Shown: positions 1 through 30,340 of the stretch, piece after piece | Numbering within the stretch: the first letter of the stretch is position 1 | Layout: the number at the start of each line of letters is the position of its first letter | Sequence record: BK067783.1 | Direction: 5' to 3' (one strand) | Length of the DNA: 30,340 nucleotides | Made by a program: the position numbers and the translations under genes | The notes under the pieces: generated by a model | Told to the model about the DNA's origin: nothing | The model's database searches: none | What the model saw: only the letters and a program-made list of their open reading frames with translations

Positions 1-1471
1 AATGAGTACGGGAAAAGAACTAATGATAAAGAAGATTGATTATTCTAATAATTATATTGAGATAGTTCCAACAAGCTCAACCATAGATTACTTTACCAAT
101 TTAAACATGACAAATCCTATGGATACTTTATTAATTGATAACAACGGTACAACATGGTTTAAGAAAACTCCTATACAATCTAGTATAGCAATCAATTCAT
201 TAAAAAATACAGTTAATAGTTATTATGGTTCATGGAATAATCAAGGTACACCAACTACATTAGCTGTAACAAATAATACACTTTACGCCATTCCGTTCAA
301 ATTAGATCGTACCACTTCTCTAAGTACCATACAATCGGAAGTAACAACAGCTGGATCGGCTTCTAATTGTAGAATGGCATTATATTCTGATTATAATGGA
401 TATCCATACAATAAAATTTCTGGTTCAGATGTTGGTGCATTAACAACACAGACACGGACTACTAGAACAATAATAAATAACTTTACAAGTGATATACATT
501 TACCGGAAGGAAGATATTTTAACGCATTAGATTGTAATGCTGGAACCGTAGTAAATACAATAACAACCGATGTTATTACATCATCTACAACAGCCGGAGC
601 TTCAACAAGTGCGACACAAACATTTACAATAACAATAGGAAGTAATACAAATCGTATATTGGTTGTTCCTATATCTTATGGAAAAGGAGCTAGTACACCA
701 AATACTAACAATGCTGTTATATCTAGTGTAGCAATAGGCGGTACATCTTTTACTAAAGCTGTAAACTTTACTAGAAATAATGCCACAGCTAACTTTGCTT
801 TGGATAGTGAGATATGGTATCTAGTAAATCCACCAACAGGATTACAAACCGTAACTATAACACCAGTAACTACAGCATCATATTATATGATAACTGGTGG
901 TTATTCGTTATACAATGTACATCAAACAACACCAATAGGTATTACATCTAGTAATGGTACAACAACCAGAACAAGTTCAATTTCTGGAACGCCAACACAT
1001 ACTAATGCATGGTTGATTGAAAACATATTTGGTATAGATACAGCGGGCGGACTTAATGAAGCAATACCACAAGCTCCATCAAATACACAGGCTTGGAATA
1101 GTATAACAGGCGCTAATCAAGTAGCTGGTGCTTCACAATATAAAACAAATCCAATAATAAATTCAGCTAATAAAATGACTTGGAATTGGGCTTTACCAGC
1201 TGCCAATAGACAAAATACCGCAGATGTTTTAATTGAATTAAATCCGCCCGCTGTGTCATCTCTACCAGTATTTAGAGCAATACCAGCTTCTTCATTAGCT
1301 CCATATCTAGGAATGATAAATACAATGGGCGCAACAAACGGTAATACAATGTACACAACTTCACATACAATGGGTACAAGTTCACCAACTGCTTTACCTA
1401 GTCCATTTTATACAAATGCCACACTAAGCACTTCAAGCGTGCCTGAAATTCTATTAAAGAATAAAGGATAG
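1..1471 (+). CDS. C-terminal part of large adhesin/tail-fibre-like surface protein (continues from 28773..30340)
   Basis: Thr/Ser/Asn-rich, beta-rich. Base 1 completes codon ACA begun at 30339, so the ATG at 2 is internal (YTITIPTIA-T-MSTGKELMIKKID). Confidence 0.85.
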   Translation, partial: MSTGKELMIKKIDYSNNYIEIVPTSSTIDYFTNLNMTNPMDTLLIDNNGTTWFKKTPIQSSIAINSLKNTVNSYYGSWNNQGTPTTLAVTNNTLYAIPFKLDRTTSLSTIQSEVTTAGSASNCRMALYSDYNGYPYNKISGSDVGALTTQTRTTRTIINNFTSDIHLPEGRYFNALDCNAGTVVNTITTDVITSSTTAGASTSATQTFTITIGSNTNRILVVPISYGKGASTPNTNNAVISSVAIGGTSFTKAVNFTRNNATANFALDSEIWYLVNPPTGLQTVTITPVTTASYYMITGGYSLYNVHQTTPIGITSSNGTTTRTSSISGTPTHTNAWLIENIFGIDTAGGLNEAIPQAPSNTQAWNSITGANQVAGASQYKTNPIINSANKMTWNWALPAANRQNTADVLIELNPPAVSSLPVFRAIPASSLAPYLGMINTMGATNGNTMYTTSHTMGTSSPTALPSPFYTNATLSTSSVPEILLKNKG

Positions 1472-1529
1472 TTGTAATTTCTAAAAATAACATGATAATG
1501 CTTATTAAGATATGATACCTTAAAATAAC

Positions 1530-1844
1530 ATGAATAAATTGGTAGCTGTTTTAATTATAGCCTCTATTTCAAGCATAGTTTTCTTTAGTGCAACATCCCA
1601 ACAAGCCTATGCAGGAGGTCGTGTTGGGTGGAATCCATGTAGTTATTTTGGTGGTTTAACTTTTTGCCACAAAAAAGTAGTACCACACGGTGTAACATCT
1701 CCACCACCAGTAGTTTGTAATATAGATAAATATCATCATTGCTCTGCACCAATAGTAGTTTGTTTTAGTGAAAGGTCGATTCTAAACAATGCAGGGATAA
1801 CACCTAGTATAATAACACAAATATTACATTTGCTTAATTGTTAG
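1530..1844 (+). CDS. Secreted Cys-rich protein
   Basis: Signal peptide ending QQAYA; 6 Cys; TATA-like TTATTAAG at 1502. Confidence 0.75.
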   Translation: MNKLVAVLIIASISSIVFFSATSQQAYAGGRVGWNPCSYFGGLTFCHKKVVPHGVTSPPPVVCNIDKYHHCSAPIVVCFSERSILNNAGITPSIITQILHLLNC

Positions 1845-1898
1845 TTACCAGAACCTTACACAATAATATTTAATAAGTACCAAATCAATTATTAAACA

Positions 1899-1985
1899 AC
1901 TGAATGGTTGACAAGCCTTCCAGGAAAATGTAGTGTTGGCGATCTAGTTATACCAACCCCATATCTAGATCGTCAATTCTTTTTA
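1899..1985 (+). ncRNA. Candidate small RNA A
   Basis: TATA TTTAATAA at 1869 (+30 = 1899); no + strand ORF; 12-bp stem 1936-1947/1965-1976 with one G-U pair; followed by a T tract. Confidence 0.5.
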
Positions 1986-2084
1986 TTTTATAATTGAAAA
2001 GCTAGCAGTTACTTCTTTCATACAATTACATTCTGGTTTACAGGATTGATGAAACATATGGATCTTACACATACAAAGCTTCAC
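1965..2084 (-). CDS. Cys/His micro-protein, 39 aa (not in track)
   Basis: GTG start; MKLCMCKIHMFHQSCKPECNCMKE; last gene of the leftward chain. Confidence 0.5.
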
Positions 2085-2085
2085 G

Positions 2086-2654: not shown

Positions 2655-2660
2655 TTCTAA

Positions 2661-3556: not shown

Positions 3557-3696
3557 TGGATTAATCTCCTGCTAGGGATACATTCTTTTCTTTTTCTAAA
3601 TCCATATTTTGAAGCACCACACCACTTACAAATAACATGAAATCCTACTACTTCAAATTCATGTTGTTTGTAATTACTCTTTGGTTTGCTTGTCAT
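3553..3696 (-). CDS. Small zinc-finger protein, 47 aa (not in track)
   Basis: MTSKPKSNYKQHEF...ICKWCG...KEC; ATGA overlaps at both ends. Confidence 0.7.
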   Translation of the reverse strand: MTSKPKSNYKQHEFEVVGFHVICKWCGASKYGFRKRKECIPSRRLIQ

Positions 3697-4133
3697 CGGG
3701 AGAAAGTCACCATTAATTGTGCGGATTTACCTAACTCTAAAACCTTATTCATTGTCCAACATCCAGCAGTTTTCTCATGGTTTCTTTCTTCTGGATCTTC
3801 GTGATGATAACACTTTGTTTTATGAACAGGTACGGATATACAATGTAATTCGTCACAATCATTTGCTATCTGTAGGTTTCTTTTCTTATAAGATTGCCAT
3901 GTTTCATAATCAGGTTTGTAAACGAGAGTCTCAAATCCTAATGACTTGGCAACATCTAAAGCGATGGTATCAACGCCTTTAGCACCACCAGAAATTATTA
4001 TCTCATTTCCAGTGTAACGACTGTTCAAAATTAAGCCTATGAACTGTCTAACATCCCTTTCTTCATTATCTGTCATATTGACACTTGTACCAACAAAAGC
4101 AATCTTCCTATTACTTGATGACGGCTGTGTCAT
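3693..4133 (-). CDS. SLOG superfamily (YspA/DUF2493-like) protein
   Basis: IAFVGTS; IISGGAKGVD; YKPD; RNLQIANDCD. Confidence 0.8.
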   Translation of the reverse strand: MTQPSSSNRKIAFVGTSVNMTDNEERDVRQFIGLILNSRYTGNEIIISGGAKGVDTIALDVAKSLGFETLVYKPDYETWQSYKKRNLQIANDCDELHCISVPVHKTKCYHHEDPEERNHEKTAGCWTMNKVLELGKSAQLMVTFSR

Positions 4134-7980: not shown

Positions 7981-9945
7981 ATGCCTGATGATTTTAGTAA
8001 GCCTCCACCTAATAGAACCGCAGAGCAAAACGCAGCTAAACAAGGTGCGCAATTATCAGCACAACAACAAGCACAAAGGCAACAACAGATAAAGTCACAA
8101 GATGTAACTAAAACAAGAGAGCAAGCACCCGGTGCTATTCAATCAGGATCAGAACAAGAAACTTTTGTTAGACAAGAAGCAGCTAAAGCAGAACAACAAA
8201 AAATGGTAGAAGGTGGATATGGAAAAGGTGCTACCAAAGATCAATATGCAGGAGCTAGGGAAGCAGCTCTTAAAGCTGGTTCGTTTAGTTATTCAACGCA
8301 GACACCAGCAAGCTTACCAAGTACAATAAACAAGGAAGGAAAAACAACAGTTAGAAACCAAGACCTTTACAAAGGCGCACCAATACAAATTCAAAAACCA
8401 AAAGAAGAAACCGTAACCATATCAACGCCAAAAGGATCAAGAACAGTAACAGGTGAACAAGCTCTCATATCAAGATTGAAAACAAATTATGCAAGTGCAA
8501 CACCACCGCAACAAAAACAATCATCATCAACACAAAAGACACAAGGCACACCACAATCAAATCAAATCAATTCCATTCTAAGACAGAATTTATCCAACAA
8601 AGAAGGACAAGCAGCTAGTGATATTTCAGGCAAGACAGAACCAGAAGCAGTTCCATTTTTATCTTTAAAATCTCCAATTAAAGTATCTGTTGTTCCTGTA
8701 AAAGCTGGTGAAACATTCAAGACAAGAGGAAGAGGTGCTTCTGGTGCAAAAACAGGTCAAAAGGTACAAATTATTATTCCAGAACAACAAGGAACAAAAG
8801 AAATTCCTGCTACATCAATAATAGATGTTTTACAATTTGCACCAATAGGAGGAATAGGTTTAGGTGGAGCTAGAGCAGCTTTGAGAGGAACAGGATCAAT
8901 AGTTGGTACAATAAAATCTACACCAGAAGTTTTCAAAACTGGTCAAGGATTGGAAAGAGTTTCAAGTCAAGCTATCACAGTACCAAAAGGAGTAAAGCCA
9001 CCAGAAGAAACCCTATTAGGTAAAGTTCAAGCTGCCTTTTCTAAACCACAACCTAAAGCAGAAACAAAACCACCTCAACAATTTACTAGTACCGAGATAT
9101 CATTAGGAAGAGGAACAGGTAAAGAACCAGAAGGTAAAGGTGGCGTATTATCTGGAAAGGGAACAGGTGGAGGAACTAAACCAAGTGGAGGAACACCAAA
9201 AGAAACCACGTCAAGATCAGGTCAAGTATTACAACAGATAGAAAAGGAAAAAGAACCAAAGACTACAACCAAGACTACAACCAAAACAGAACAAATCAAT
9301 AAAGCTATAACAAGAGAAAAAGAACCTACAACCACAAAAGCTAGATCCAAAGTAAAACCAGAAACAACAGAAGAACAAATCCCTATATTACTAACAAGAC
9401 CACCTAGCACTAGAACAACACCAAAAGAAACAAGACGTAATCCACTTGTTCCAGTTATACCAATATCAGTTCCAGCACCACCACAACCAAAGACAAAACC
9501 AAAGGAAGAGGAAAGATTAGGAATTGTAGATCTATTACAAACACAAAAAAATATACAAACACCAAAGCAAGGAACAGAACAAACAACAATCTTTGATACA
9601 TTACAAACTCAAGTAACAAGACAAACACCAAAGCAGACACAAGAACCAATAACATTTTCTGATCTAGTTTATACAGAAAAAGGAGGTGGAGAAACACCAA
9701 AGGCAGGCGCAGAGTTTGGAGGGCTTGGTGGAAATCCTGGATTGATAGGTAAAGTATCTAGTGGAGGATCAAAGAAAAATTATCTAGGCAATGTTCCAAT
9801 AGATGATATCATAGGAATAGGAAAACAGGAAGAATTAACTTACAAAGAATCAACAATCAAAACAAGATCACAGGCAGAAGAAAGGAGAGCTTCATCAGGT
9901 AGTTTTGTAGGATCTCCACAAAAAGGGAAGGTTAAATTCTTTTGA
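7981..9945 (+). CDS. Large low-complexity Q/T/K/P/G-rich protein, likely disordered
   Basis: 654 aa, no Cys or Trp, strongly biased composition. Confidence 0.8.
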   Translation: MPDDFSKPPPNRTAEQNAAKQGAQLSAQQQAQRQQQIKSQDVTKTREQAPGAIQSGSEQETFVRQEAAKAEQQKMVEGGYGKGATKDQYAGAREAALKAGSFSYSTQTPASLPSTINKEGKTTVRNQDLYKGAPIQIQKPKEETVTISTPKGSRTVTGEQALISRLKTNYASATPPQQKQSSSTQKTQGTPQSNQINSILRQNLSNKEGQAASDISGKTEPEAVPFLSLKSPIKVSVVPVKAGETFKTRGRGASGAKTGQKVQIIIPEQQGTKEIPATSIIDVLQFAPIGGIGLGGARAALRGTGSIVGTIKSTPEVFKTGQGLERVSSQAITVPKGVKPPEETLLGKVQAAFSKPQPKAETKPPQQFTSTEISLGRGTGKEPEGKGGVLSGKGTGGGTKPSGGTPKETTSRSGQVLQQIEKEKEPKTTTKTTTKTEQINKAITREKEPTTTKARSKVKPETTEEQIPILLTRPPSTRTTPKETRRNPLVPVIPISVPAPPQPKTKPKEEERLGIVDLLQTQKNIQTPKQGTEQTTIFDTLQTQVTRQTPKQTQEPITFSDLVYTEKGGGETPKAGAEFGGLGGNPGLIGKVSSGGSKKNYLGNVPIDDIIGIGKQEELTYKESTIKTRSQAEERRASSGSFVGSPQKGKVKFF

Positions 9946-12541: not shown

Positions 12542-12738
12542 AAATTACAAAACATAGCTCAACATTCGTAATAACTGCTTTGACATATGCTAAAATGAAA
12601 CGCAATAGTGCTACATTCCCTAACTGTTATTATTGTATTATAAAACTAGAAATTGGTGATTTAATACATAGCAAGCCAGGAGAAAGTAAACGTCATTATT
12701 ACCATAAAAAATGTGCGGAAATGGTTCATCTGATATGA
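12538..12738 (+). CDS. LIM/PARP-like small zinc-finger protein
   Basis: CYYC...YHKKC. Confidence 0.65.
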   Translation: MKITKHSSTFVITALTYAKMKRNSATFPNCYYCIIKLEIGDLIHSKPGESKRHYYHKKCAEMVHLI

Positions 12739-15491: not shown

Positions 15492-15548
15492 TCTGTATCA
15501 TTCCATGACATACAAGTATCTATTAGCTGGTGGATATTATAGAATACC

Positions 15549-16638: not shown

Positions 16639-16878
16639 ATGAGATACCGTTCCCAAAGTCAGATCATTCAATCAATCCTAGAAACAGCTCTTACACCAGT
16701 TTCTAAAACTAGAATCATGTACAAGGCTTATCTATCATATACACAGGTAACAAATTATCTTACTCTATTGGTAAAATCTGGTCTGTTAAAAGAAAACAAG
16801 ACTAATCATTTTGAAGCAACAGACAAGGCAAAAGAATTTATCAAATACGCCAAAGCAATCCAAGAATTAACAGAATAA
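16639..16878 (+). CDS. Winged helix-turn-helix regulator (HTH_45-like, abundant in Nitrososphaerota)
   Basis: MRYRS..II..ILE...KTRIMYKAYLSYTQ...YL..L...GLL...T.K..EF; own TATA at 16608. Confidence 0.85.
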   Translation: MRYRSQSQIIQSILETALTPVSKTRIMYKAYLSYTQVTNYLTLLVKSGLLKENKTNHFEATDKAKEFIKYAKAIQELTE

Positions 16879-17698: not shown

Positions 17699-17956
17699 AT
17701 GCCTTACAAGTTCAAAGACACTGAGAACGCAAAGATACCAATGAAAAGGCTTTGGTTATTCCTGTGTGGGTTAAGCTTGTTCCTGTCAGGATTTGATATT
17801 ATTTATGGAAAATATACTATGTATGATCTAGGAGCTATACCCATGTCTGTATTTGGAATTTGGGCTTTACAATTTCATGGATGGTACAAGATAGAAAGAT
17901 ACTTGATGGAATGGAAAATGAAACGTAGATCAAAGTTTGATTACTATCATACCTAA
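17699..17956 (+). CDS. Small two-TM membrane protein
   Basis: Hydrophobic segments; start uncertain (17699 or a later ATG). Confidence 0.6.
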   Translation: MPYKFKDTENAKIPMKRLWLFLCGLSLFLSGFDIIYGKYTMYDLGAIPMSVFGIWALQFHGWYKIERYLMEWKMKRRSKFDYYHT

Positions 17957-18594
17957 TCAACTTCTTTAGATAGTGCTTCTGCTTCTGCTTCATCATAATT
18001 ACGTGTACCTTCTTTACCAAGATCTAGATAATCTATTGTTTGTGCAAATCTGTTATTTCCTTTGTGTCCTAGCCTTGCAGATACAGAACCAATATCCGCT
18101 TTGATACCTGATAAAGTACCATAGTACATATCCTTCCCTCTAGACTTTCTCATAGCATGAGTAACAGTTTTTTGTTTAGTAACAGAAGTAGGAGTATTGA
18201 AAGCTAAGATATTTAATTTCTTGCCTAACCTCTTACACCAATCATAGACTATTGCATAATTCATACCGGGAAATAACGCACCTGACTTATCTTTCAAATA
18301 CTCTTTGAGTTCTGGAATAAAGATTTTAGGCACAAGTCTTTGATCATTATCTTCTGTTTTGGTCTTACCTAAATAACAAATACCTAATACCAAATCAAAG
18401 CTATCCATAGTAAGTTTCAATGTTTCATTTATTCGTAAAGCCAACCAGTAAGTTATCTTGAACATCATAATAACATCAGAGTCTTTCCACTTTCGTATCT
18501 TTAAGCTAGGTATTACATCCAACATTTGTATGAACTTTGTATAAGGAATCCAAGAAGATGTCTCTTTATTCTGCCAAGTCTCATCATGCTTCAT
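17953..18594 (-). CDS. int: Tyrosine recombinase/integrase, catalytic domain only
   Basis: ALRINE (R), KTK (K), HAMR (HxxR), LGH (H), TIDY (Y). Confidence 0.9.
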   Translation of the reverse strand: MKHDETWQNKETSSWIPYTKFIQMLDVIPSLKIRKWKDSDVIMMFKITYWLALRINETLKLTMDSFDLVLGICYLGKTKTEDNDQRLVPKIFIPELKEYLKDKSGALFPGMNYAIVYDWCKRLGKKLNILAFNTPTSVTKQKTVTHAMRKSRGKDMYYGTLSGIKADIGSVSARLGHKGNNRFAQTIDYLDLGKEGTRNYDEAEAEALSKEVD

Positions 18595-18770: not shown

Positions 18771-19370
18771 ATGGTCACACCAGCATTAATTGATCTAAAC
18801 ATCCTTGCATTGAAACATCTTGATAGAGCTTACTTTGCATTATATCATCAAGACTATGACGCATGTACAGCTTCATTACATTCTGTTAATGCAGCTCTCA
18901 AGGATGGTTATAGAGTAGAGTTCAATACAGACAAGTATAGAGCTGCTACAGAACATCCTACACTAATATACTGTAAGCCTTGCGGTACTAAATTCAATAA
19001 GGATGATATCAAGATGTGGAATATGTTATTACCATTAGCACAACAGATAGGTTCAGGTAGTACACATACTAAGGTATGGACATGCCATGAATGTAAAGCT
19101 ACTAACATTTTATCAGAATCAAAGATAGAGAAACAAATTCTAGAAGAACCATTCTTCCTAAAGATTGTTCCATATCCACCTTCTAGAAAACAGAACTTAT
19201 CAGACCGTACAACTTATCATATTAAATACAAAGCTTGGTTTGGCATGGCAGTATCAGAACTAACAAGACAGATATCACAGTTAAGATGGGATAATCATAG
19301 ACCGGGTGATGAACAAGGAATGGATCAAATTCAAGAACAGATACTAGCTACACTGGATAGCAAATATTAG
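18771..19370 (+). CDS. Zinc-ribbon-containing protein (start revised to 18771)
   Basis: CKPC...CHEC; TATA ATATATAA at 18741, 30 nt upstream. Confidence 0.75.
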   Translation: MVTPALIDLNILALKHLDRAYFALYHQDYDACTASLHSVNAALKDGYRVEFNTDKYRAATEHPTLIYCKPCGTKFNKDDIKMWNMLLPLAQQIGSGSTHTKVWTCHECKATNILSESKIEKQILEEPFFLKIVPYPPSRKQNLSDRTTYHIKYKAWFGMAVSELTRQISQLRWDNHRPGDEQGMDQIQEQILATLDSKY

Positions 19371-19372: not shown

Positions 19373-19474
19373 ATGGTATTTAGTTACGAATGTTCTACAA
19401 GTGAGCATGAATTTTGTAGGATGCCAAATTGTATTTGTTCATGTCATAAGAGGTTTAGAGGTCAATGCCAATAG
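19373..19474 (+). CDS. CxCxCH-family micro-protein, 33 aa (not in track)
   Basis: ECSTSEHEFCRMPNCICSCH; overlaps the ATPase start. Confidence 0.65.
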   Translation: MVFSYECSTSEHEFCRMPNCICSCHKRFRGQCQ

Positions 19475-20643
19475 AGCAAAAAGTTATTACAATAGGTGGT
19501 CAGAAGGAAGAGTTCTTCAAACCCATTACTACCAAATGGAAGGGCATAGAGATGATACGCAATCAAACACCAAAGACAGCTATACATTCTATAGCTCAAT
19601 ATGCAAAAAGATTAGACTATGTTAAGATAGGTATAGTAGGAGATCCGCACACAGGAAAAACAACACTAGCTAAATTTCTTGCTCATTTCTTACATTTGAT
19701 GTGCTTGGATCTTTTAGGTATCACATATGTAGTAAAGATATTTACAAGAGATGAATTACTTAGTTTTAAGAAAACAATAGAAGCACTACCAGCAGCTAAC
19801 TATATCTTCATATTTGATGATGTATCATGGATTGAGAAGGAAGGAACACCACAACAGATTAACGAATTGAAAGCTGGTGAATCAATGATACGTCACTTCA
19901 AAGATAAGAAGGATGTTAAAATCATACAGATAGATAACTACCATTACACAAAGGCGGAAAACAAATATTTGAGACAATCTCATTTTAAGATATTTACTGC
20001 TATTGGATCAGAAGAGGAAGATAACATTAATTCAATTACAAAAAACTCTAATCCATTTATTATATCACAATTCGCAAAACTACAAACAGAGATGTATTCA
20101 CAAGGAACATTTACTTTTCTAATTGGAAAGAACAGACGAAACTTTACTATGAGATACAGAGATCCATTTATCCCTGTTTTATTTTGGGATGGAAGATCAT
20201 TAAGATTTATTGTAACACCTGAACGTGAATGGATGGATAGAGGGTGCGCGATCTGTTCTATGGCAGAAGGAGCTAAAGACGAGAATTTTAGCTTGGACAA
20301 GTTCAAACAAGATCTGGATGCAAGATATGGTGAAATCATAGCAAAGAACGCAATTAAGATAAAAATGAAGGAACTTGGATTAAACACCTATAGACCAGAA
20401 CTTACAAGAGCTGTAAACAAGATATCTAAAACCATGACAGAACAAAATTTTGATTTATTAGCATTAGGTCAAATTTACGGATTAAAGCTTACTCCACCAC
20501 CTAAAAGAATCAAGCTAGATAAATTAATAGAGCAAGAGAAAGATAAAAATAAAAACCTAGATTCATTTTCAGATAAAAACATAGTACAAGTTATTCCTTG
20601 GGAAGATGAGGAAAGAGAAAAACCAGAGGTAATACAACAATGA
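19465..20643 (+). CDS. P-loop ATPase (spindle-virus AAA-type, putative assembly/packaging)
   Basis: Walker A GDPHTGKT; Walker B IFIFDD; downstream strand ending HY. Confidence 0.85.
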   Translation: MPIEQKVITIGGQKEEFFKPITTKWKGIEMIRNQTPKTAIHSIAQYAKRLDYVKIGIVGDPHTGKTTLAKFLAHFLHLMCLDLLGITYVVKIFTRDELLSFKKTIEALPAANYIFIFDDVSWIEKEGTPQQINELKAGESMIRHFKDKKDVKIIQIDNYHYTKAENKYLRQSHFKIFTAIGSEEEDNINSITKNSNPFIISQFAKLQTEMYSQGTFTFLIGKNRRNFTMRYRDPFIPVLFWDGRSLRFIVTPEREWMDRGCAICSMAEGAKDENFSLDKFKQDLDARYGEIIAKNAIKIKMKELGLNTYRPELTRAVNKISKTMTEQNFDLLALGQIYGLKLTPPPKRIKLDKLIEQEKDKNKNLDSFSDKNIVQVIPWEDEEREKPEVIQQ

Positions 20644-22130: not shown

Positions 22131-22607
22131 CTAAGAATTAGCTTGTTGATCTGCTTTCTTGCCGATAATTCCGTCTAAGATACCTTTAGATAATTCTTGT
22201 TTGACATTGAACTGTCTTTCTGTCTTTGCTTTAGCTAACAATGTTAACAAAGTCATATGGTTATTATTTACATCCTTTACACTTTCAGAACTTTTCGCAT
22301 CCATAGAATAATCAACAGATTCACAGAACATCATTCCCAATTTCACCAAAGGAGCTGCTCTATGAGCTGTCATATGATAACTTGCTGATTTGAAAAGATT
22401 ACCAAGCTCTTCTCGATATTTTGCCAAAGATCCAAATTGATTAGATGCTATATGATGAGTTTGCCACCAACCACGCCTAGAATCAATAACTCTTTCTATT
22501 CTTGTCTTACCATCTTCTGTTTCAACTAGTCTTTCTGTTTTCCAAGATTCTAAAACTACATCTACTAAATCAGCTACAGATTTTTCCGATTCTTGCATGG
22601 TAGGCAT
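22131..22607 (-). CDS. Hypothetical protein (start revised to 22607)
   Basis: The longer track start runs through an AT-rich promoter region. Confidence 0.7.
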   Translation of the reverse strand: MPTMQESEKSVADLVDVVLESWKTERLVETEDGKTRIERVIDSRRGWWQTHHIASNQFGSLAKYREELGNLFKSASYHMTAHRAAPLVKLGMMFCESVDYSMDAKSSESVKDVNNNHMTLLTLLAKAKTERQFNVKQELSKGILDGIIGKKADQQANS

Positions 22608-22672
22608 TATTATATAGTAGAAATACACTAGAACATAAACCTTTATTATATATCTCATATAAAATAGAACAC

Positions 22673-23014: not shown

Positions 23015-24013
23015 ATGGGTATTATAACACATAAGGATCTATTCACCCACAAATACATTACAGCTGAAATTAGAGATTCATCAGGAAGAATCCATTTCAG
23101 ACATATCAAACATATGTTAGGTGATTACTGGTTGACATTCATCGATAAGGATCTTTATTGCTTCAAGGTACATGATGCAAGAATAGGAACATACAAAGAA
23201 ACAGCTGCTAAATCAATTCGTATATTACATTATTCCACAAAACATTATCTACCAATTTCACCAGAATACAATAAAGAACTAGAAGAAGTTCTAAGATTAA
23301 ATTCATTACCAAGAATGAATACAACAATGTTCGGAGCTTTCAAGATTCTATCTCAAAGAGAAAAGAAAGCTAGTGCTGGTATAGTACAAAACAATGACGG
23401 TACAACAACCATACAAGAGTTCAAAGGTTTTGAAACACATCTATTAAAAAACTTAGTTGAAGATGTAGCAGACAAACCAGAACAGTATAACCAACAAATG
23501 ACAAACTTAAAAACATATTTTGACAACATGGCAGTATATCAAATCATTACACCAGTAAAAGACATTACAGAATTTATAGAAGATGATCTTATTGCAACAG
23601 ATCCAAAGTTCTTAGGAGATGTAGTTAGATCTTGTATGTTACTTGACAAGGAACAAAAGAAAGTATTAAACACCAAGATAGATGCGAAAAAGAATTATCT
23701 TGTTATAGCTGCATTAATCTTAATTATTGGTGCAGTAGCTTTCATGGGTGTCTATCTAATATCTAACGGATCAGGAGCTAACCCATTTGCTTCTATCTTC
23801 CCACAGTTCAACACATCACCAAGCGCAACAGGTGGGGGTGGAACAACTGGTACTAATTATGCATGTGTACACATAGACGATGCTACCATATTCAGTAAAT
23901 ATCCATTACCAGAAGATCTAAACAAAGCTGTATCTGATGGAGATATCAAGCTATGCCAACTATCACCAAATGTGCAAAAGTTAGTAAAGAACTATACACC
24001 AACACATCATTAA
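23015..24013 (+). CDS. Membrane-anchored protein of the morphogenesis module
   Basis: Large soluble domain, one TM near the C-terminus, Cys pair in the tail. Confidence 0.8.
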   Translation: MGIITHKDLFTHKYITAEIRDSSGRIHFRHIKHMLGDYWLTFIDKDLYCFKVHDARIGTYKETAAKSIRILHYSTKHYLPISPEYNKELEEVLRLNSLPRMNTTMFGAFKILSQREKKASAGIVQNNDGTTTIQEFKGFETHLLKNLVEDVADKPEQYNQQMTNLKTYFDNMAVYQIITPVKDITEFIEDDLIATDPKFLGDVVRSCMLLDKEQKKVLNTKIDAKKNYLVIAALILIIGAVAFMGVYLISNGSGANPFASIFPQFNTSPSATGGGGTTGTNYACVHIDDATIFSKYPLPEDLNKAVSDGDIKLCQLSPNVQKLVKNYTPTHH

Positions 24014-24016: not shown

Positions 24017-24304
24017 ATGTTCAACAAGAAACCAAAAGAACCATTAACAGAACAGGAAGAAAAGATAAAACAATGGAAAGCAAACAACTTAAAGATACAT
24101 CGCAGAACTTTGTATTTTGTTATACTGGTTTCTTTTATAGGAATAGGTTTGTATCTAAAAGGAACAATAACAGCTGGTGATTATGTTGTAATGATCATCC
24201 CAATGTGGTTTTTATCAATCGTAATACTAATGGCAGGCATATCAAGACTAGGAAGATACACAACACAAATTTACATTGAATCTCTAAAATCAAAGGATGC
24301 TTAA
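24017..24304 (+). CDS. Two-TM membrane protein
   Basis: Two hydrophobic segments. Confidence 0.7.
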   Translation: MFNKKPKEPLTEQEEKIKQWKANNLKIHRRTLYFVILVSFIGIGLYLKGTITAGDYVVMIIPMWFLSIVILMAGISRLGRYTTQIYIESLKSKDA

Positions 24305-24468
24305 TGTTTGGTCTTAATGATGCACAAGAAGTTTATATAGGAATAGTAGTAGGCTTAGGAGTTCTTTATTTCTACTGGACTGTACGTAACATCAAGCGCA
24401 AAAAGAAGGCTAAGACTAATCATTGGAAAGAGAAAAAACTAGCAAAAAGACAAAAAGATAAAGTCTAG
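24304..24468 (+). CDS. TM plus Lys-rich micro-protein, 54 aa (not in track)
   Basis: TAATG overlap; TM followed by RNIKRKKKAK. Confidence 0.65.
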   Translation: MFGLNDAQEVYIGIVVGLGVLYFYWTVRNIKRKKKAKTNHWKEKKLAKRQKDKV

Positions 24469-24486
24469 TGGAGTAGTATAAAAACA

Positions 24487-24867
24487 ATGCTAGAACTTTT
24501 ACACATGCAGCTAGTATTCTTACAAACCATTATAGTCAATCAAACAAATCCCTGTTTTCTTAATTATACATCAAACAACATTTGGCAAGATTGCGGTATG
24601 GGTAAAGATTATCTAGCTGCAATTACAATCGGCTTCCAATATGTAACAGGTGGATATTTCTCTCTAGTAATTGCATTTGTAATTATTCTATTCACGTACA
24701 TAAAATATCACAAGCTCACATATACTTTATTTGTAGGCACGTTATTCATTCCTATTTCATACTTCGTATTCCCTACACAATTTCTTAATTTCGCTTTGAT
24801 AATGGCTAGCTTTGGAATTGCAACACTAATTTATTATGTAATAGTATCACAGACAAATGAACAGTGA
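24487..24867 (+). CDS. Multi-TM putative structural protein
   Basis: 3-4 hydrophobic segments; sequons NQT and NYT. Confidence 0.75.
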   Translation: MLELLHMQLVFLQTIIVNQTNPCFLNYTSNNIWQDCGMGKDYLAAITIGFQYVTGGYFSLVIAFVIILFTYIKYHKLTYTLFVGTLFIPISYFVFPTQFLNFALIMASFGIATLIYYVIVSQTNEQ

Positions 24868-24947
24868 TAAACGAAATACTAGGTTATAAGCTTTGGTCAT
24901 ATGACGGACATCGGCTTATATCTAAAATTGTTTTGATATAGTTTAAG

Positions 24948-25229
24948 ATGCCAGAATCCAGCACAATCATGGGACTTGTGGGCGCATTTATCGCTATTGC
25001 GATCATGCTTAACATAGGTGTCCAGATCTTAGGTAACGTACAAACTGCGACAAACTGTTCTAACCTGCCGGGTAACGCAGGTACACACCAGACAACTTCT
25101 AACGCCACAGGATGGGCGCTACAATGTCTTAACCAGAACACCAACGCACAATCAGCATACACGCTATTAGGAGTAATTCTTATAGTTGTGGCAGCTGTAG
25201 CAATACTATTCGTGGTCAGACTTCTTTAA
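24948..25229 (+). CDS. Major capsid protein, spindle-shaped virus type (SSV1 VP1/His1-like)
   Basis: 93 aa; two long hydrophobic helices flank a Cys-bounded loop with NCS/NAT sequons; C-terminal VVRLL; visibly GC-richer codons; own promoter and T-tract terminator. Confidence 0.8.
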   Translation: MPESSTIMGLVGAFIAIAIMLNIGVQILGNVQTATNCSNLPGNAGTHQTTSNATGWALQCLNQNTNAQSAYTLLGVILIVVAAVAILFVVRLL

Positions 25230-25250
25230 ATTACATCCACCACACCACAC

Positions 25251-25257
25251 CTTTTTT
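25251..25257 (+). terminator. Oligo-T archaeal terminator after MCP
   Basis: T tract about 20 nt after the stop codon. Confidence 0.55.
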
Positions 25258-25476
25258 ATATTATGATTGCTAGGAGTAGTGCTATAAACAATACGTGATC
25301 CAATTTGTCCATATTATACAATAGAGACAGGTACAGATAAGAACGAGTATGTAACATAACAAGACAAAACTTTATGTAATTCTATATCTAATTCAATCTA
25401 TGACCTATGGAGAACCTTTAGAGTTCTTTAGAAAACTAGCCAAGACAAATCCAAAGAAAGGAGAACCATTTTACAA

Positions 25477-25605
25477 ATGAGTATCTTTGATTTGTTGGTG
25501 GATGTAGCGGTAGCTAGTGCCATTATAAAAACTACAAAGAAGCTATCAGATGATACTAAAGAATCAGATAATTCCAAGTATGAAGCCTTAGGGGTGAAAG
25601 ATTGA
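25477..25605 (+). CDS. Micro-protein, 42 aa (not in track)
   Basis: AAGGAG upstream; TTGA overlap with the next gene. Confidence 0.55.
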   Translation: MSIFDLLVDVAVASAIIKTTKKLSDDTKESDNSKYEALGVKD

Positions 25606-25871
25606 GTAGTCTTGTATTTCTTGGACTTTCTACAATCGTATTCATAATAACATACGGAATTGTATTTCTACTTGTTCCGCAAATACTAGGACACTTCTTT
25701 ACTGTACTTGATTCATACAATCTTACCAGTACCATGTCATCTAGTTGGCAAGCAATTTATACACAAAATGAAAACACTACTAAATTTCTAGTACCGTTAA
25801 TTCCTAGTATTGGAGTTTTTCTACTAGTCTTGAAAGTGCTTATGGCAGCTTCGGTTAAAGGAAGTGACTAG
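25602..25871 (+). CDS. Two-helix hydrophobic protein, possible minor capsid protein
   Basis: Same size and topology as the MCP; NLT/NTT sequons in the loop. Confidence 0.65.
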   Translation: MSSLVFLGLSTIVFIITYGIVFLLVPQILGHFFTVLDSYNLTSTMSSSWQAIYTQNENTTKFLVPLIPSIGVFLLVLKVLMAASVKGSD

Positions 25872-25911
25872 GCATAAACTTTATTAATTATTGTTATAGA
25901 GAAATGATACC

Positions 25912-26523
25912 ATGAAAAGACTTTCTTTTATATCATCACATCCTAAAACCTCAATCATATTAATTATTCTTGCTGGTGCTATTTCCAGTTCAGCTTATGC
26001 AGCTAGTACCATAATAACTGATACTGGAATTACAACAACTAATCTTACAGTAACAGGAACTTGTTCAGGTTGTGGTGGTGCTGGTAGTTTTAATTCTTAT
26101 GCTTTAGTTTTTAATAATACAATAGCAACAACTAATATTCATTTTATAAATAAGTTTCAAATTGGTAATGACAAATCAGTCTTAGTTTCAGATACTTTTG
26201 TACAGGGTTATATGATAAACAGTACACAACAAGTAATTAATTCATTTTCTAATTCTGGTGCAGTAGTCGAGAATACTCCACAAAATGATCAATCATTCGG
26301 GGGGAAATATAAAATAGCTTACAATGATTCTACAAAGAAAATAACAGTATCAAAGAATGATGCGGTATTACAAACTCTATTCATTAACACATCACAGTTT
26401 AATGATGGTACAAACTTATCCAATGAAGGTGTATCTATATCAAGTGATGGAAAATATATAGGAATATTTGGTTTAGATACTACTGGAATAATTGACAGAC
26501 TAATAATCTATCAGGGATCATAA
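25912..26523 (+). CDS. Secreted beta-rich putative virion protein
   Basis: Signal peptide ending AYA; sequons. Confidence 0.75.
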   Translation: MKRLSFISSHPKTSIILIILAGAISSSAYAASTIITDTGITTTNLTVTGTCSGCGGAGSFNSYALVFNNTIATTNIHFINKFQIGNDKSVLVSDTFVQGYMINSTQQVINSFSNSGAVVENTPQNDQSFGGKYKIAYNDSTKKITVSKNDAVLQTLFINTSQFNDGTNLSNEGVSISSDGKYIGIFGLDTTGIIDRLIIYQGS

Positions 26524-27931
26524 TGGAACGGAATAAAAAAAAAACGAGTTCTATTTACTCGTCCTGTTAGGAATTTCTGTACTATCCATATTTTATATCC
26601 ATGATGCTTATGCAGTAGATGTTTATCCCGGTACTCAAATACAAAACAGCGCACCTCATCCTTATTCAAATTATACAGCTGATGTACATCCATTCTTTAC
26701 TGTTAGTTCCATAACAACAAACACTAATCATATATTTCTTGGTTCACCATCATATGATATTGTATGGATTGGAAATACAGTAAACGCTAACATTACATCT
26801 TTCCATGAAGGTGTAAACGCTACATTCAAAATAACAAACAATCCAGTTAATCCAACATTTACTATTCTAGGATTAATCCAACAGGTTAAGCTAGATGGAG
26901 TTATACAACCATATGGATCTACATGGTCATATACTGGTGGTAATACCATGACTCAAATCAGTCCGGGTACACATCATACCATATTCATATCATGGGTAGC
27001 TGGTTCTATTACATCATCTAGCTTTACAATAAAAGGAATTATTCTAAGTGGAGCTGGTGTATTTTCTAATTCAAACATAACTTTATCCAGTCCTGTTAAT
27101 TCTAATCTTACTGCATTACTTTTATTTAATCAAAATGGTTTACAAGACTCTATAATATTTAATCCACCTTTCCCTTTGGTAGCTGGTACACAACTTACTA
27201 TTCCAATTACTTTACGTGACATATCAAATCCAGTTGGAACTATTACCTATACAGAAGAAGCTATTGTATCAACACCAACGCAAGTAAGTGTAATAACATC
27301 TACACCGTTTAATTTAATATTTAATTCATTTAGACCGGGTTCGTTAAACTTTAATCAAACCAATACAAACGTGCTTCCTATCTATTTCATAACAACACAG
27401 ATAAACGCAAGTGATAAAAGATTGTCAGTGATATATCCTAATACAATGAATCTGCAATGTAACCTAGCTTATACATATGCCTTCACAAACAAAACCTATG
27501 GAGCTCCATTACCTAATGTTCCTTATACACCAGATCCAAATCATGTAAACTCTAGCTTCATATTCCATAAAGTAAACAATGAAATAATAACTGTATCTTG
27601 TCTTGATACTATATCATCTTCAACAGGCAAATACATTTTAACTCAAACTGGTTTTCCTTTACAAACTCAGGTATCAGGTTTTAGAAACGGAACATTTGGA
27701 ACACATGGACAATTTGGAGTATTTGATTTAATTTCACTAGTGGGAATAATAATAGCCATGATAGGATTCAATAGAAAGAATGAATCAGTGGGTGCTTTCT
27801 TTGCACTAGCAATATTAGGCATAGAAGGACTGATACAAATCATAACAATAAATACAGCAATCATAGGAGCTTTGATCGTGATAACAATGCTCATATATCT
27901 CTCGACACGCAAATCACAGGATTTTGGTTAG
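26523..27931 (+). CDS. VP4-like surface protein with C-terminal TMs, interrupted by a frameshift in A10 (26535-26544)
   Basis: The frame of 26948..27931 is open back to 26537 and encodes a signal peptide but has no start codon; the ATG at 26523 joins it only via a -1 shift. Confidence 0.75.
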
Positions 27932-27945
27932 GGTGATAAATTAGC

Positions 27946-28362
27946 TTGGTCTTTGTAATTGAGAAAAGTTTATTAGCAGTAATTTTCGTGTACTGTGTAA
28001 ATATTTCAATGTTAGGTGGACAATTTATCTTTGGTGATGTGATGCACATTCAACTAACTAATTTCTCTGGTGTACCAATTAAGACAGATATATTTTCTAA
28101 TATACAGACAGCAACACTAAACCAAGAACAACAAGCATTTACTAACCAGACTTCTTCTTGGATTAGTCAGATACAAAACCCTGCGACATATTTAGGATCA
28201 GCTGCTATAATAGCTTGGGATATGATTTTATTAATATCTGGATTTTACATATTTGGTATAATGAATGATATGCAAGTACCAATAATTTTCATAATGGGAT
28301 TCATGGCATTATACACTTTCTTTTTAGGTCGTTCCATAATGGGATTGGTGCGTGGCATTTAG
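27946..28362 (+). CDS. Multi-TM putative structural protein
   Basis: Hydrophobic termini and a sequon-bearing loop. Confidence 0.75.
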   Translation: MVFVIEKSLLAVIFVYCVNISMLGGQFIFGDVMHIQLTNFSGVPIKTDIFSNIQTATLNQEQQAFTNQTSSWISQIQNPATYLGSAAIIAWDMILLISGFYIFGIMNDMQVPIIFIMGFMALYTFFLGRSIMGLVRGI

Positions 28363-28365
28363 TTT

Positions 28366-28776
28366 ATGGAAATTTCTATTCTTGAATATATTGTGTACGC
28401 TTTAATTGGATATTCTTCTTTCGCTGTTCTAATTGTTTCAGCTGTTAAAGAAATTCCAGATAGTAGAGTCTTATCTTTAGTTAGAGTAATTTATTTATTT
28501 CCCGGTATCATAGCATTAATGATTCTTGCAAGCTCTGGAATAAACATAGATGTAAATACAGTAACAACAAACAACTTAATCAAATCCATAAACACTACAC
28601 AAACATGGACAGAAGCTACGACACAATCAAATACTATCATACTTCAAAATCCAGTATGGTCAATGTTCCATTGGTTGTTAGCTATTACTCTAATATTCTA
28701 TATGATAAAACAAATCTTGAACCTGTTAACAAAAGCACCAGCTCAGGGCGTAAGGGAAGATAATGAAGTCGAATGA
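28366..28776 (+). CDS. Three-TM putative structural protein
   Basis: Three hydrophobic segments. Confidence 0.75.
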   Translation: MEISILEYIVYALIGYSSFAVLIVSAVKEIPDSRVLSLVRVIYLFPGIIALMILASSGINIDVNTVTTNNLIKSINTTQTWTEATTQSNTIILQNPVWSMFHWLLAITLIFYMIKQILNLLTKAPAQGVREDNEVE

Positions 28777-30340
28777 TAAGAAGAACTTACCTTCTAATCC
28801 TAATAGTTTTTATATCATCTATCTACATTTCATCAGCTAACGCACAATTCGCAATTCAACCACCAACCGTTAACATACCACCAACAAATGCGTACAATCA
28901 ATTTAATGTAAGCAATGCTACCATTTCAGCAAAGAACTTTATTGCTTCTGTTAATATAGTAGGAAAGAATGGTTTAGGTGTAACAGGTTCTAACAGTTCT
29001 CAAACAATATATCTAACAGCTCCTAATCCATCATCAGGATTACCAACTACTTATTGTCCTGCTAACTTTGGATTTGTTTCTTATAACGCAACGACAAATA
29101 TTCTAGCTTGTGCATTGTTAAATCAAACTGGATCTGGTTCTGGTGTAACATCATTAAATAGTTTGACAGGTGCTTTAACAATAGCCAAAGGAACAAACAT
29201 CAATTCCATAACCGCAGCTGGTAATACTATAACCATAAACGCAGCTGGTTGGCAAAACAATACGGGTTCTAATTTAGGTACAAGTGGTTCTGGTGTCTTT
29301 GCTTCAATGAGTGGATCAATATTGCAATTCTTAAAACTAATATCATCAAATTCCTTTCTAAGTATAACAACAAACTCCACCAATGTTATATTTAATATTC
29401 CAAGTATTGTAACAAAATTAATTGCTGGTACTGGAATATCGGTAAATCAAACATCAGGAAATATTTTAGTAACTAATACGGGTGTGACAAAATTAGCTGC
29501 AACATCACCAGTTGTAGTTAACGCATCAACTGGTCAAGTAAATGTTTCTTGCCCTACTTGTTCAACTACAACAGGAACTATAACAGGAAGTGCAAACGCT
29601 GGTAAAGCTACTGGTTCAGTTGGTGTATTATCAACACCTACAACTACGTTAATCAAAGGCAGAAACATGACAGGTACTAGTCCTATTGTAGTTACAAAAA
29701 CAAATGATACAGATATAGCTATATCATGTCCAACATGTTCTAGTACAACTGGAACAATCACTGGTGGATCTAATATCGGTACTTCTGGTTTTGGTTTCTT
29801 CAAGAACAGTACAAATAATAATATTAATCTAAGAAACTTAACTACTTCAAGATCTGATCTATTTACAATAACTCAATCTTCTAATAATGTTAATCTAGCT
29901 TCTAGTTTCAAATCTAATACTATTGCATGTACGAATCAATTCATTTCTGCATTTACAAATTCAACTGGAATTTATACATGTGCAACACCCACTAATACAG
30001 CTCAAGTAGTAAGCGCAGACAATGGAGTAAGTTTAATTAGTTCACAATTTAATGCAACAGAAACAAAATTAAAATCATTACGTAATTCAACAGCTTATGT
30101 ATTATGGAATCATAATACAACATCAATTACACCTAGCTTCCAGTTTAAAATTAATACAAAGGCTTGTACAAACAATCAATTTATATCAGCAATATCAAAC
30201 AGTTCAGATTCTACATGTAATAAAATGTTACTTAATGCAGTAAGTAAAACTAATTCTTATACTGTTGCATCTACAGATGATATTATATTAGTAAATGCAA
30301 CAGGAGGTAACTATACTATTACTATTCCTACTATAGCAAC
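28773..30340 (+). CDS. N-terminal part of the ~1012-aa adhesin (not in track; continues at 1..1471)
   Basis: Translated by hand with no stop. ATGA overlap; signal peptide ending SANA; about 20 N-x-S/T sequons; internal repeats. Confidence 0.85.
   Translation, partial: MIRRTYLLILIVFISSIYISSANAQFAIQPPTVNIPPTNAYNQFNVSNATISAKNFIASVNIVGKNGLGVTGSNSSQTIYLTAPNPSSGLPTTYCPANFGFVSYNATTNILACALLNQTGSGSGVTSLNSLTGALTIAKGTNINSITAAGNTITINAAGWQNNTGSNLGTSGSGVFASMSGSILQFLKLISSNSFLSITTNSTNVIFNIPSIVTKLIAGTGISVNQTSGNILVTNTGVTKLAATSPVVVNASTGQVNVSCPTCSTTTGTITGSANAGKATGSVGVLSTPTTTLIKGRNMTGTSPIVVTKTNDTDIAISCPTCSSTTGTITGGSNIGTSGFGFFKNSTNNNINLRNLTTSRSDLFTITQSSNNVNLASSFKSNTIACTNQFISAFTNSTGIYTCATPTNTAQVVSADNGVSLISSQFNATETKLKSLRNSTAYVLWNHNTTSITPSFQFKINTKACTNNQFISAISNSSDSTCNKMLLNAVSKTNSYTVASTDDIILVNATGGNYTITIPTIA

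Follow-up and report, generated by a model that had tools for sequence, protein, structure and literature searches.

The Nitrosopumilaceae spindle-shaped virus NTT2: a circular nipumfusivirus genome with an Xer-like recombinase

Genome and gene content

The window, that is the whole stretch of 30,340 nt that was analysed, is base for base the sequence of GenBank BK067783.1 (100% identity). It holds the genome of the Nitrosopumilaceae spindle-shaped virus NTT2 (1..30340), a circular dsDNA of about 67 genes and 32.9% G+C. A second deposit, NTT1 (BK067791.1), equals NTT2 at every base after reverse-complementation and rotation by 4814 nt. Both come from Populus rhizosphere soil in Tennessee, and the virus is uncultivated.

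Two adenine methyltransferases are encoded on the plus strand, a D12-class N6-adenine DNA methyltransferase (12711..13454; PF02086, E 9.3e-7; TIGR00571 dam) and a phage-type Dam N6-adenine methyltransferase (13681..14208; PF05869, E 7e-14; phrog_111; TIGR01712), which probably shield the viral DNA from host restriction. On the same strand lie the genes for an HNH endonuclease-like protein (14582..15085), which matched PHROG HNH families (E 2e-4 to 3e-3) and had no Pfam match, and for a winged-helix DNA-binding protein of the archaeal Sso10a/HTH_45 type (16639..16878; PF14947, E 9e-17; NF053610 Sso10a_fam, E 8e-20). The best BLAST match of the latter is from Ca. Nitrosotalea (Ni et al. 2024 supplement, PMC10866085). 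The archaeal and thaumarchaeal signatures named in the initial annotation were borne out by this protein, by the G+C content, and by the binning of relatives with Nitrosopumilaceae. A SLOG/DprA-like protein is encoded on the minus strand (3693..4133); PF10686 and PF02481 both scored below cutoff and TIGR00732 gave E 0.001. A low-complexity protein of 654 aa, rich in Lys, Gln, Thr, and Pro (7981..9945, plus strand), contains internal repeats of 66-69 nt. No Pfam or PHROG family matched it, and a homologue is present in L011.

Putative capsid protein and structural module

The putative major capsid protein (ORF60 of BK067783; 24948..25229, plus strand) is a two-helix hydrophobic hairpin of 93 aa, in which a loop of some 20 aa joins two long hydrophobic helices and C37, W56, and C60 are conserved. 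By tblastn, each of the 11 deposited genomes has a match to it (52-100% identity). Three other conserved ORFs lie upstream. ORF54 (22131..22658, minus strand) and ORF56 (23015..24013, plus strand) both have homologues in L004, L006, L009, and L011. ORF56, a putative assembly or structural protein of 332 aa, has a predicted TM helix about two-thirds along and no family match in Pfam or PHROG. ORF59 (24487..24867, plus strand) is a conserved multi-pass membrane protein. These three and the zinc-ribbon protein ORF47 (see below) form a core set of the Nipumfusiviridae, of which all homologues are found in NTM1, L009, and L011 and all except that of ORF59 in L006.

Downstream of the capsid gene, a structural/membrane module of ORF62-ORF66 (25602..28776, plus strand) leads into the fibre gene. 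It comprises a hairpin-like membrane protein (ORF62), a secreted protein of 203 aa (ORF63), a protein of 327 aa with a C-terminal TM segment (ORF64), and two further membrane proteins (ORF65 and ORF66). Homologues of the module are present in NTM1, and ORF62 has homologues in L009 and L011 as well.

The spindle shape was put forward as a hypothesis, and the group has neither an isolate nor an observed virion (Ni et al. 2024, PMC10866085). It is improbable that the element is an integrative plasmid or a vesicle-borne element of non-viral nature, or a virus whose particles are not spindles, with the "capsid protein" as no more than a membrane protein. In favour of such a reading are that no particle was observed, that a hairpin of two hydrophobic helices makes for a very simple fold, and that Foldseek and hhalign gave no link between the 93-aa protein and known spindle-virus capsid proteins. 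Read as a capsid protein, as is preferred here, the hydrophobic two-helix protein would build the particle together with the membrane proteins.

A junction-spanning gene and the circularity of the genome

One ORF of 1012 codons is open from position 28773 (MIRRTYLL...) through 30340/1 to a stop at 1471. Its N-terminal 522 codons (28773..30340) and C-terminal 490 codons (1..1471), both on the plus strand, appear in BK067783 as a partial ORF67 and as a separate ORF1 that starts from an internal ATG at position 2. The segment 28773..30340 has 1568 nt, or 522 codons plus AC; AC and base 1 (A) give ACA (Thr), which is followed by ATG AGT ACG, and the translation joined over the junction reads ...SYTVASTDDIILVNATGGNYTITIPTIATMSTGKELMIKKIDYSNNYIEIVP... 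An open frame of 1012 codons is far beyond chance in DNA of 33% G+C. The 41-mer at the junction is internal in BK067791.1 (25507-25547), where the whole 1012-aa CDS is annotated (its ORF60; 24056..27094, minus strand). The source contig in IMG/VR, IMGVR_UViG_3300006903_000010 of 30420 bp, consists of the NTT2 genome plus an 80-bp terminal direct repeat, its last 80 bases repeating NTT2 1-80, and shows 0 mismatches to circularised NTT2 over the 14.3 kb compared. The internal position of the junction in BK067791 and the repeat on the IMG/VR contig thus establish NTT2 as a circle. The circle and the junction-spanning ORF of the initial annotation, including its frame arithmetic, are in this way independently confirmed. 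Neither a direct nor an inverted repeat (for the latter, of at least 8 nt) is present at the termini of the NTT2 record itself, the repeat having been trimmed off prior to deposit. Terrafusivirus michiganense NTM1 (BK067788) likewise has an ORF that is open across the record ends.

A physically linear genome, terminally redundant or circularly permuted and circular only in assembly, would fit the GenBank labels of BK067783 and BK067791, which are both linear, the 80-bp direct terminal repeat on the IMG/VR contig, and the linearity of other thaumarchaeal spindle viruses (NSV1). It is nevertheless very improbable. The identical sequence was cut at points 4.8 kb apart in two assemblies, and the ends are therefore arbitrary and not fixed termini. 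Inverted terminal repeats and a protein-primed PolB are absent, and both the conserved tyrosine integrase and the integrated relative described below need a circular substrate. Virions of the spindle type are not known to be packaged by a headful mechanism.

The protein encoded across the junction has a signal peptide, MIRRTYLLILIVFISSIYISSANA, and contains repeats of CPTCS(T/S)TTGTITG and C-T-N-(N)-Q-F-I-S-A motifs. Thr, Ser, and Asn make up 40% of its residues, and it has 29 N-x-S/T sequons and paired cysteines. Secreted and heavily glycosylatable, it may be a terminal fibre or adhesin; no match was obtained in Pfam, PHROG, or the PDB. As for the continuous "tail-fibre-type motif" announced earlier, the frame is indeed continuous, but no Pfam or PHROG model matches the pieces or the whole protein.

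The tyrosine recombinase and integration in a relative

An Xer-like tyrosine recombinase of 213 aa, which consists of the catalytic domain only, is encoded on the minus strand (17953..18594). The catalytic residues R54, K79, H146, R149, H177, and Y189 do not vary across an alignment of 23 sequences and line up with those of XerA and XerD. Its profile matches only the catalytic domains of XerA of P. abyssi (4a8e, E 2.4e-9), XerD, and XerH, covering residues 125-273 of the 292-aa XerA; the N-terminal core-binding (SAM-like) domain is absent, with about 35 residues preceding the catalytic domain. The enzyme matches the integrase family phrog_216 (E 1.7e-10) and scores 21.3 bits against Pfam PF00589, below the cutoff of 27.1 bits. 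With its full R-K-H-R-H-Y set, Xer profile matches, and PHROG integrase assignment, it is a genuine tyrosine recombinase, as the recombinase of the initial annotation, and homologues occur in 10 of the 11 deposited genomes. The 3' end of its gene overlaps by 4 bases (17953-17956) with ORF45 (17699..17956, plus strand), a small conserved protein of 85 aa whose homologues adjoin the integrase in NTM1 and contig L011 as well.

A more distant relative (ATPase 37% identical) was found integrated at the 3' end of a tRNA-Arg(GCG) gene in an archaeal chromosome. The provirus carries homologues of ORF46, 47, 48, 54, 56, 59, 60, and 62, and a shikimate operon of archaeal type, with DHQS-II and a GHMP-type kinase among its products, lies in its host flank. 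A matching empty tRNA-Arg(GCG) site is present in a sister sample. The occupied and empty contigs are identical until the tRNA-Arg 3' end and divergent thereafter, with one A/G difference in the acceptor strand; a second contig begins at tRNA position 15 and has the virus-type base. The integrated state was thus seen for a relative of NTT2 and not for NTT2 itself.

Judging from the integrated relative, the recombinase would integrate the NTT2 circle into the host chromosome. That nipumfusiviruses are temperate, and that a minimal, catalytic-domain-only Xer-like recombinase integrates them at the 3' end of host tRNA genes, is a proposition for which we see the chances as evenly balanced. If true, it would tie the family directly and physically to the chromosome of an archaeal host for the first time; Ni et al. 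reported no such host link, with neither tRNA nor spacers giving a match (Ni et al. 2024, PMC10866085).

Alternatively, the NTT2 enzyme could be an Xer-like resolvase of replicated circle dimers and not an integrase, which we consider unlikely, though less so than the other alternatives weighed here. The nearest structures are those of XerA, XerD, and XerH, the core-binding domain is lacking, and no close relative was found in integrated form. In addition, no tRNA-like att fragment was detected in NTT2, NTM1, or L011 by a search that recovers a 61-nt fragment in L010. Against a resolvase, a homologous enzyme of 44% identity lies 1.4 kb from the tRNA-Arg junction in the integrated relative, and both PHROG and the source annotations label the family as integrases. 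A role as resolvase in NTT2 leaves room for integration by other family members.

The ATPase, its zinc-ribbon partner, and the proposed mode of replication

The core AAA+ ATPase (ORF48; 19465..20643, plus strand) has 392 aa, with the Walker A sequence GDPHTGKTT, the Walker B sequence IFIFDD, and a beta-rich and helical C-terminal part with the conserved cysteines C261 and C264. It was matched by tblastn in all 11 deposited genomes (32-100% identity, E down to 1e-56) and is represented by at least 90 protein clusters in metagenomes. Using an AF2 model (pLDDT 80), Foldseek retrieved RuvB, Vps4, Cdc48, a clamp loader, Orc, and STIV2 B204 at E of about 1e-5, which places the protein among generic AAA+ proteins. 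Alignment with B251 of SSV1 by hhalign (probability 80.7%, E 1.3e-5) spans 82 columns around Walker A and B. TM-scores are 0.25-0.3. The ATPase thus resembles B251 weakly, and it is this weak similarity that underlies its proposed role in replication. Always directly upstream of the ATPase gene is that of the conserved zinc-ribbon protein ORF47 (18771..19370, plus strand), the "zinc-binding domain" core gene of Ni et al. (2024, PMC10866085). It has no family match in Pfam or PHROG. Homologues are found in L004, L006, L007, L009, and L011, and in L008 a protein of similar kind stands before the ATPase.

None of the 98 six-frame ORFs of at least 50 aa matched a polymerase, primase, helicase, or Rep family in Pfam and NCBIfam, alongside which 20 proteins were searched with PHROG profiles; the earlier statement that there is no recognisable replicase therefore holds for this survey. 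Only two ORFs exceed 500 aa, both low-complexity and fibre-like. The host replisome would copy the circle, and the AAA+ ATPase, weakly like the DnaA/Orc-like B251, probably recruits it together with its zinc-ribbon partner. Two direct repeats of 41 nt, 88% identical (15079..15221), are located in the longest non-coding stretch (15086-15548). Each holds a palindrome, TCGAGTAGA..TCTACTCGA, and after it a (TG)n tract, and the pair might serve as an origin, an att site, or a regulatory site. For the origin, this repeat-bearing non-coding region at 15.1-15.5 kb is a possible location.

A contig of 69% G+C that was binned with the Alphaproteobacteria also carries the trio of integrase, zinc-ribbon protein, and ATPase, so this replication-integration module may extend far outside the ammonia-oxidising archaea.

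Relation to known virus families

The sequence has been in print since January 2024 (Ni et al. 2024, PMC10866085), in a paper that described the lineage as having a core ATPase and a capsid protein of hairpin form and as lacking PolB. In March 2025, the lineage was classified as Nipumfusiviridae (2024.003A), with NTT1 (BK067791.1) as the exemplar of Terrafusivirus tennesseense in the genus Terrafusivirus (ICTV 2025, PMC12451623). NTT2 belongs to this species at 100% nucleotide identity to the exemplar, with which it shares the capsid protein, ATPase, zinc-ribbon protein, conserved unknown proteins, and source. The genome is thus a complete circle of an already known virus with ammonia-oxidising archaea as putative hosts, and we are highly confident in its description as a complete circular Nipumfusiviridae genome with the core genes and an Xer-like recombinase and without an HMM-visible replicase. 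The main text of the first description is silent on topology and integrase (Ni et al. 2024, PMC10866085). Newly added here are the catalytic set, Xer-like class, and distribution of the recombinase, the integration site of the relative, the replicase-negative ORF survey, and the class of the ATPase.

The initial annotation had suggested a separate lineage, and NTT2 is indeed distinct from Thaspiviridae and Fuselloviridae, but that lineage has already been described and ratified. An undescribed lineage of thaumarchaeal spindle viruses would agree with the dissimilarity to both families at the sequence level and with tblastn matches of the ATPase and capsid protein to only 11 Nitrosopumilaceae spindle-shaped virus records. 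The chance of this is negligible, since the exact sequence is found in two deposits that were published and classified as above. Novelty is ruled out by BK067783.1, BK067791.1, and the ICTV classification; the implied claim to it falls, its closest classified relative, the exemplar, being identical in sequence.

Like NTT2, the fusellovirus SSV1 (X07234) is a circular dsDNA without its own polymerase that encodes a tyrosine recombinase, as well as a capsid protein that is small and hydrophobic and a large terminal fibre, both putative in NTT2; the AAA+ ATPase of NTT2 weakly resembles SSV1 B251. However, the NTT2 recombinase is Xer-like and not of the SSV type (hhalign probability against SSV1 D335, 1.3%), and hhalign detected no sequence similarity between the capsid protein and SSV1 VP3. 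The att site of SSV1 lies inside the integrase gene, which is split on integration, whereas the integrated nipumfusivirus relative keeps this gene intact. The NTT2 genome is also twice the size, and its putative host is mesophilic.

With NSV1 (Nitrosopumilus spindle-shaped virus 1) of the Thaspiviridae, NTT2 shares a putative ammonia-oxidising archaeal host, a comparable genome length, and the presumption of a spindle shape, and in the view of the ICTV there is a distant relationship between the two families (PMC12451623). NSV1 is linear and has a family B polymerase, whereas NTT2 is circular and has an integrase; the hallmarks of Thaspiviridae and Halspiviridae, linear inverted-repeat ends and a protein-primed family B DNA polymerase, are absent from it.

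Within the family, the late module of NTM1 is syntenic with that of NTT2, and the shared proteins of the two are 29-83% identical (capsid protein 72%, ORF54 61%, ORF56 50%, integrase 46%, and ATPase 36%). The early or accessory genes of NTM1 are largely unrelated to those of NTT2, and its fibre protein shares just a short N-terminal stretch.

The genome and its records

The window and BK067783.1 (isolate NTT2, rhizosphere) are one and the same sequence. When the ATPase and a small hydrophobic protein were used as tblastn queries against an annotated collection of phages and archaeal viruses, 11 records and no others were matched, each of which bears the name "Nitrosopumilaceae spindle-shaped virus"; two match at 100%. 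NTT1 and NTT2 correspond to two genomes in IMG/VR, obtained in Tennessee from communities of Populus roots and rhizosphere (PMC10866085 supplement). A scan of IMG/VR with the window ATPase as single protein returned the source contig only.

The family Nipumfusiviridae received ICTV ratification in March 2025, and Terrafusivirus tennesseense (NTT1, BK067791) is one of its species (PMC12451623), of which there are ten versus eleven genomes deposited (PMC12451623). The novelty implied by the initial annotation, in which the genome may represent a separate lineage, was thus not upheld: a close relative had been classified, and the genome, the lineage, and the absence of PolB had all been published, for which reason they carry no weight as a discovery here. 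Its reading of the genome as thaumarchaeal in character and distinct from the Thaspiviridae was a good one; the comparison with the latter (NSV1) was made through published descriptions. What is added is modest, namely an explicit proof of the circle, a characterization of the recombinase, an integrated relative together with the empty site, and notes for curation.

Circularity and the junction-spanning gene

The window comprises 30,340 bp with a G+C content of 32.9%, and no terminal repeats, direct or inverted, were found at its ends. The ORF at 28773..30340 ends on two bases of an incomplete codon, which base 1 completes to ACA, and the frame then enters the ORF at 2..1471. The joined frame across 30340/1 is open for 1012 codons, from the signal-peptide-like MIRRTYLLILIVFISSIYISSANA to the stop at 1471, and the translation at the junction (...NYTITIPTIATMSTGKELMIKKID...) is the same as that reported initially. 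An open frame of 1012 codons in A+T-rich DNA excludes chance, which confirms the observation at the junction. The record BK067791.1 (NTT1) has the same length as the window and, when reverse-complemented and rotated by 4814 nt, equals it in all bases. It carries the 41-mer of the junction internally, at 25507-25547, and annotates the long gene as one CDS of 1012 aa. NTT2 goes back to an IMG/VR contig (IMGVR_UViG_3300006903_000010) of 30,420 bp, whose final 80 bases are the first 80 of the window. One sequence has therefore been recovered in two assemblies that were cut 4.8 kb apart and that each close on themselves, so that the molecule is a circle with arbitrary ends and not a linear one whose termini are fixed. 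The long frame, the internal position of the junction in BK067791.1, and the 80-base repeat together bear out the circularity that had been claimed from the window alone. The sister genome NTM1 (BK067788.1; Terrafusivirus michiganense) is likewise a circle, cut within a gene: a minus-strand segment of 128 codons is open across the ends of its record.

One and the same circle underlies BK067783.1 and BK067791.1, both of which were deposited as "linear". In the former, the gene for the 1012-aa protein is divided between ORF67, which is partial, and ORF1, with an internal ATG as its start (window 28773-30340 and 1-1471). The words circular, integrase, recombinase, and terminal repeat do not occur in the main text of the describing paper (PMC10866085), where an integrase figures solely as the name of a BLAST hit in a supplementary table (PMC10866085). 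The value for curation lies in one circle standing as two linear records, with its largest gene split in one of them and with topology and integrase undiscussed in that paper.

The 1012-aa protein is secreted, judging by its signal-peptide-like N-terminus, and its gene closes the structural gene block. Thr, Ser, and Asn make up 40% of its residues, and it contains 29 N-glycosylation sequons, paired cysteines, and internal repeats. Searches of Pfam, PHROG, and the PDB with both pieces of the gene and with the contiguous ORF of NTT1 gave no match. The protein can reasonably be regarded as a putative terminal fibre or adhesin.

The recombinase

The ORF at 17953..18594 (-) encodes a protein of 213 aa that scores below the Pfam cutoff for Phage_integrase and matches integrase families of PHROG with an E value of 1.7e-10. 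In a large protein collection, 25 homologues were found at E <= 0.001, most of them with PF00589, and of the 11 genomes deposited, 10 have a homologue. The full catalytic set (R54, K79, H146, R149, H177, and Y189) is invariant in an alignment of 23 sequences. Profile matches were obtained to the archaeal XerA (4a8e, E 2.4e-9), XerD, XerH, and IntI4, in each case to the catalytic domain only; approximately 35 residues take the place of the core-binding domain of these four proteins. The invariant catalytic set, the Xer matches, and the PHROG match substantiate the recombinase of the initial annotation, which is unrelated to the SSV1-type integrase.

Integration of a relative at a tRNA-Arg gene

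A distant homologue of the ATPase (37% identical) was found on a 45-kb ENA contig (LUOR22-1 scaffold_501). The left part of this contig is cellular DNA, with genes for peroxiredoxin, aquaporin, UbiD, and CofH and an archaeal-type shikimate operon with an AroA'-type DeoC, dehydroquinate synthase II, and a GHMP-type kinase. This flank is adjoined by a tRNA-Arg(GCG) gene (15272-15347), after which follow homologues of window ORF46 (the integrase, intact), 47, 48, 54, 56, 59, 60 (capsid), and 62. In a sister sample, a contig of 117 kb (LUOR22-1_SAMEA13322678 scaffold_138) has the same flank and tRNA gene (15272-15348), followed by different, cellular-looking genes. Up to the tRNA 3' end, a single A/G difference, located in the acceptor strand, is all that separates the occupied from the empty contig; directly beyond this end they diverge. 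A third contig (L010) begins at position 15 of the tRNA and has the virus-type base; such a start would be expected if the assembly had broken at an att repeat of about 60 nt. These contigs show integration at a tRNA gene of an archaeal chromosome for members of the wider group, as seen for the relative and not for the window virus.

No tRNA fragment was detected in the window by ARAGORN, by Rfam (E up to 10), or by a scan for the T-loop motif, and a tRNA-like fragment is likewise absent from NTM1 and from the close relative L011; the same Rfam search picks up a 61-nt tRNA fragment in L010. Searching IMG/VR for the virus-side junction sequence of the provirus in its free form gave no match, and blastn of the tRNA-Arg against the phage collection found tRNAs of bacterial phages only. 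Contigs with close homologues of the integrase or ATPase, when checked for integration, were all purely viral.

The integrated relative and its matching empty site are a useful by-product. Until now, host links of the Nipumfusiviridae consisted of composition and binning, and the authors of the describing paper matched no host via tRNA or spacer (PMC10866085). The provirus junction supplies such a link directly and in testable form, and it is suggestive of a temperate lifestyle; viruses of ammonia-oxidising archaea are of relevance to the nitrogen cycle.

Replication genes and the ATPase

All 98 six-frame ORFs of at least 50 aa were compared with Pfam and NCBIfam. At E <= 0.001, Pfam returned the winged-helix protein (HTH_45, DUF4364), two adenine methyltransferases, a SLOG/DprA-like protein (two families), the integrase, the AAA ATPase, and one spurious zinc-ribbon match. 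NCBIfam matched Sso10a, the same two methyltransferases, DprA, a small-GTPase P-loop, and, weakly, FlaK, while the sole addition from PHROGs was an HNH endonuclease. No replicase was recognised among these ORFs by Pfam and NCBIfam, or among the 20 proteins compared with PHROGs, in agreement with the initial annotation. Just two ORFs are longer than 500 aa, each either of low complexity or fibre-like.

The model of the ATPase (19465..20643, +; pLDDT 80) is similar to AAA+ proteins such as RuvB, Vps4, clamp loaders, and Orc, and its profile aligns with B251 of SSV1 from the Walker A to the Walker B region with a probability of 80.7%. The zinc-ribbon ORF47 (18771..19370, +) lies upstream of the ATPase gene in every case. 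By analogy with fuselloviruses, the likeliest role of this pair would be to recruit the host replisome. In the longest non-coding region (15086-15548) lie two 41-nt direct repeats (15079-15221), 88% identical and each with a 19-nt palindrome; (TG)n tracts and an inverted CACACAC sequence come after them. The region is a candidate origin or regulatory site.

The putative capsid protein

For the putative capsid protein (24948-25229, +; 93 aa), a search of 1.84 billion cluster representatives yielded 105 relatives; in the alignment, two helices are hydrophobic and a loop carries a conserved Cys...Trp...Cys. In this loop, Cys37...Trp56...Cys60 are kept across 49 relatives, a pattern that suggests a disulphide-stapled outer loop. 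The AF2 model is a two-helix hairpin, for which Foldseek gave 0 matches in the PDB and none of significance in BFVD, such short hairpins probably being beyond the method. A profile search of PDB sequences yielded no match, and hhalign against VP3 of SSV1 was negative, short helical hairpins probably lying beyond such tools as well, so that the fold match is not regarded as refuted. The modelled architecture agrees with the published assignment, although these searches did not reproduce its connection to the capsids of known spindle viruses; particles of the Nipumfusiviridae have never been seen.

Other genes and relatives on other contigs

Two distinct N6-adenine methyltransferases (D12 class, phage Dam type) adjoin an HNH endonuclease-like gene at 12711-15085, and this group may be an anti-restriction or selfish-gene cluster. 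The SLOG/DprA-like protein at 3693-4133 (-), within the leftward early-gene block, has sub-threshold matches to YspA-related SLOG and to DprA. A 654-aa protein (7981-9945) is of low complexity and rich in Lys, Gln, Thr, and Pro, with internal repeats of 66-69 nt and a very high skew of A over T (0.39-0.46) in its gene; it is conserved in L011 and, in NTM1, at the C-terminus alone.

On a 66.5-kb contig with a G+C content of 69%, binned as Alphaproteobacteria (CBDAUR010000001.1, 24725-45660), an integrase homologue (38% identical) and an ATPase homologue (33% identical) occur together with a homologue of the zinc-ribbon ORF47 and an N6/N4 methyltransferase; the 21 kb examined showed no ORF resembling the hairpin capsid protein. 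Purely viral contigs of Nipumfusiviridae were found in a "Flavobacteriales" MAG (NYTT01000055.1, G+C 32%), where mis-binning was probably driven by composition, and in a Nitrosopumilaceae MAG (DUJB01000067.1). Both illustrate the mis-binning of which the describing paper warned (PMC10866085).
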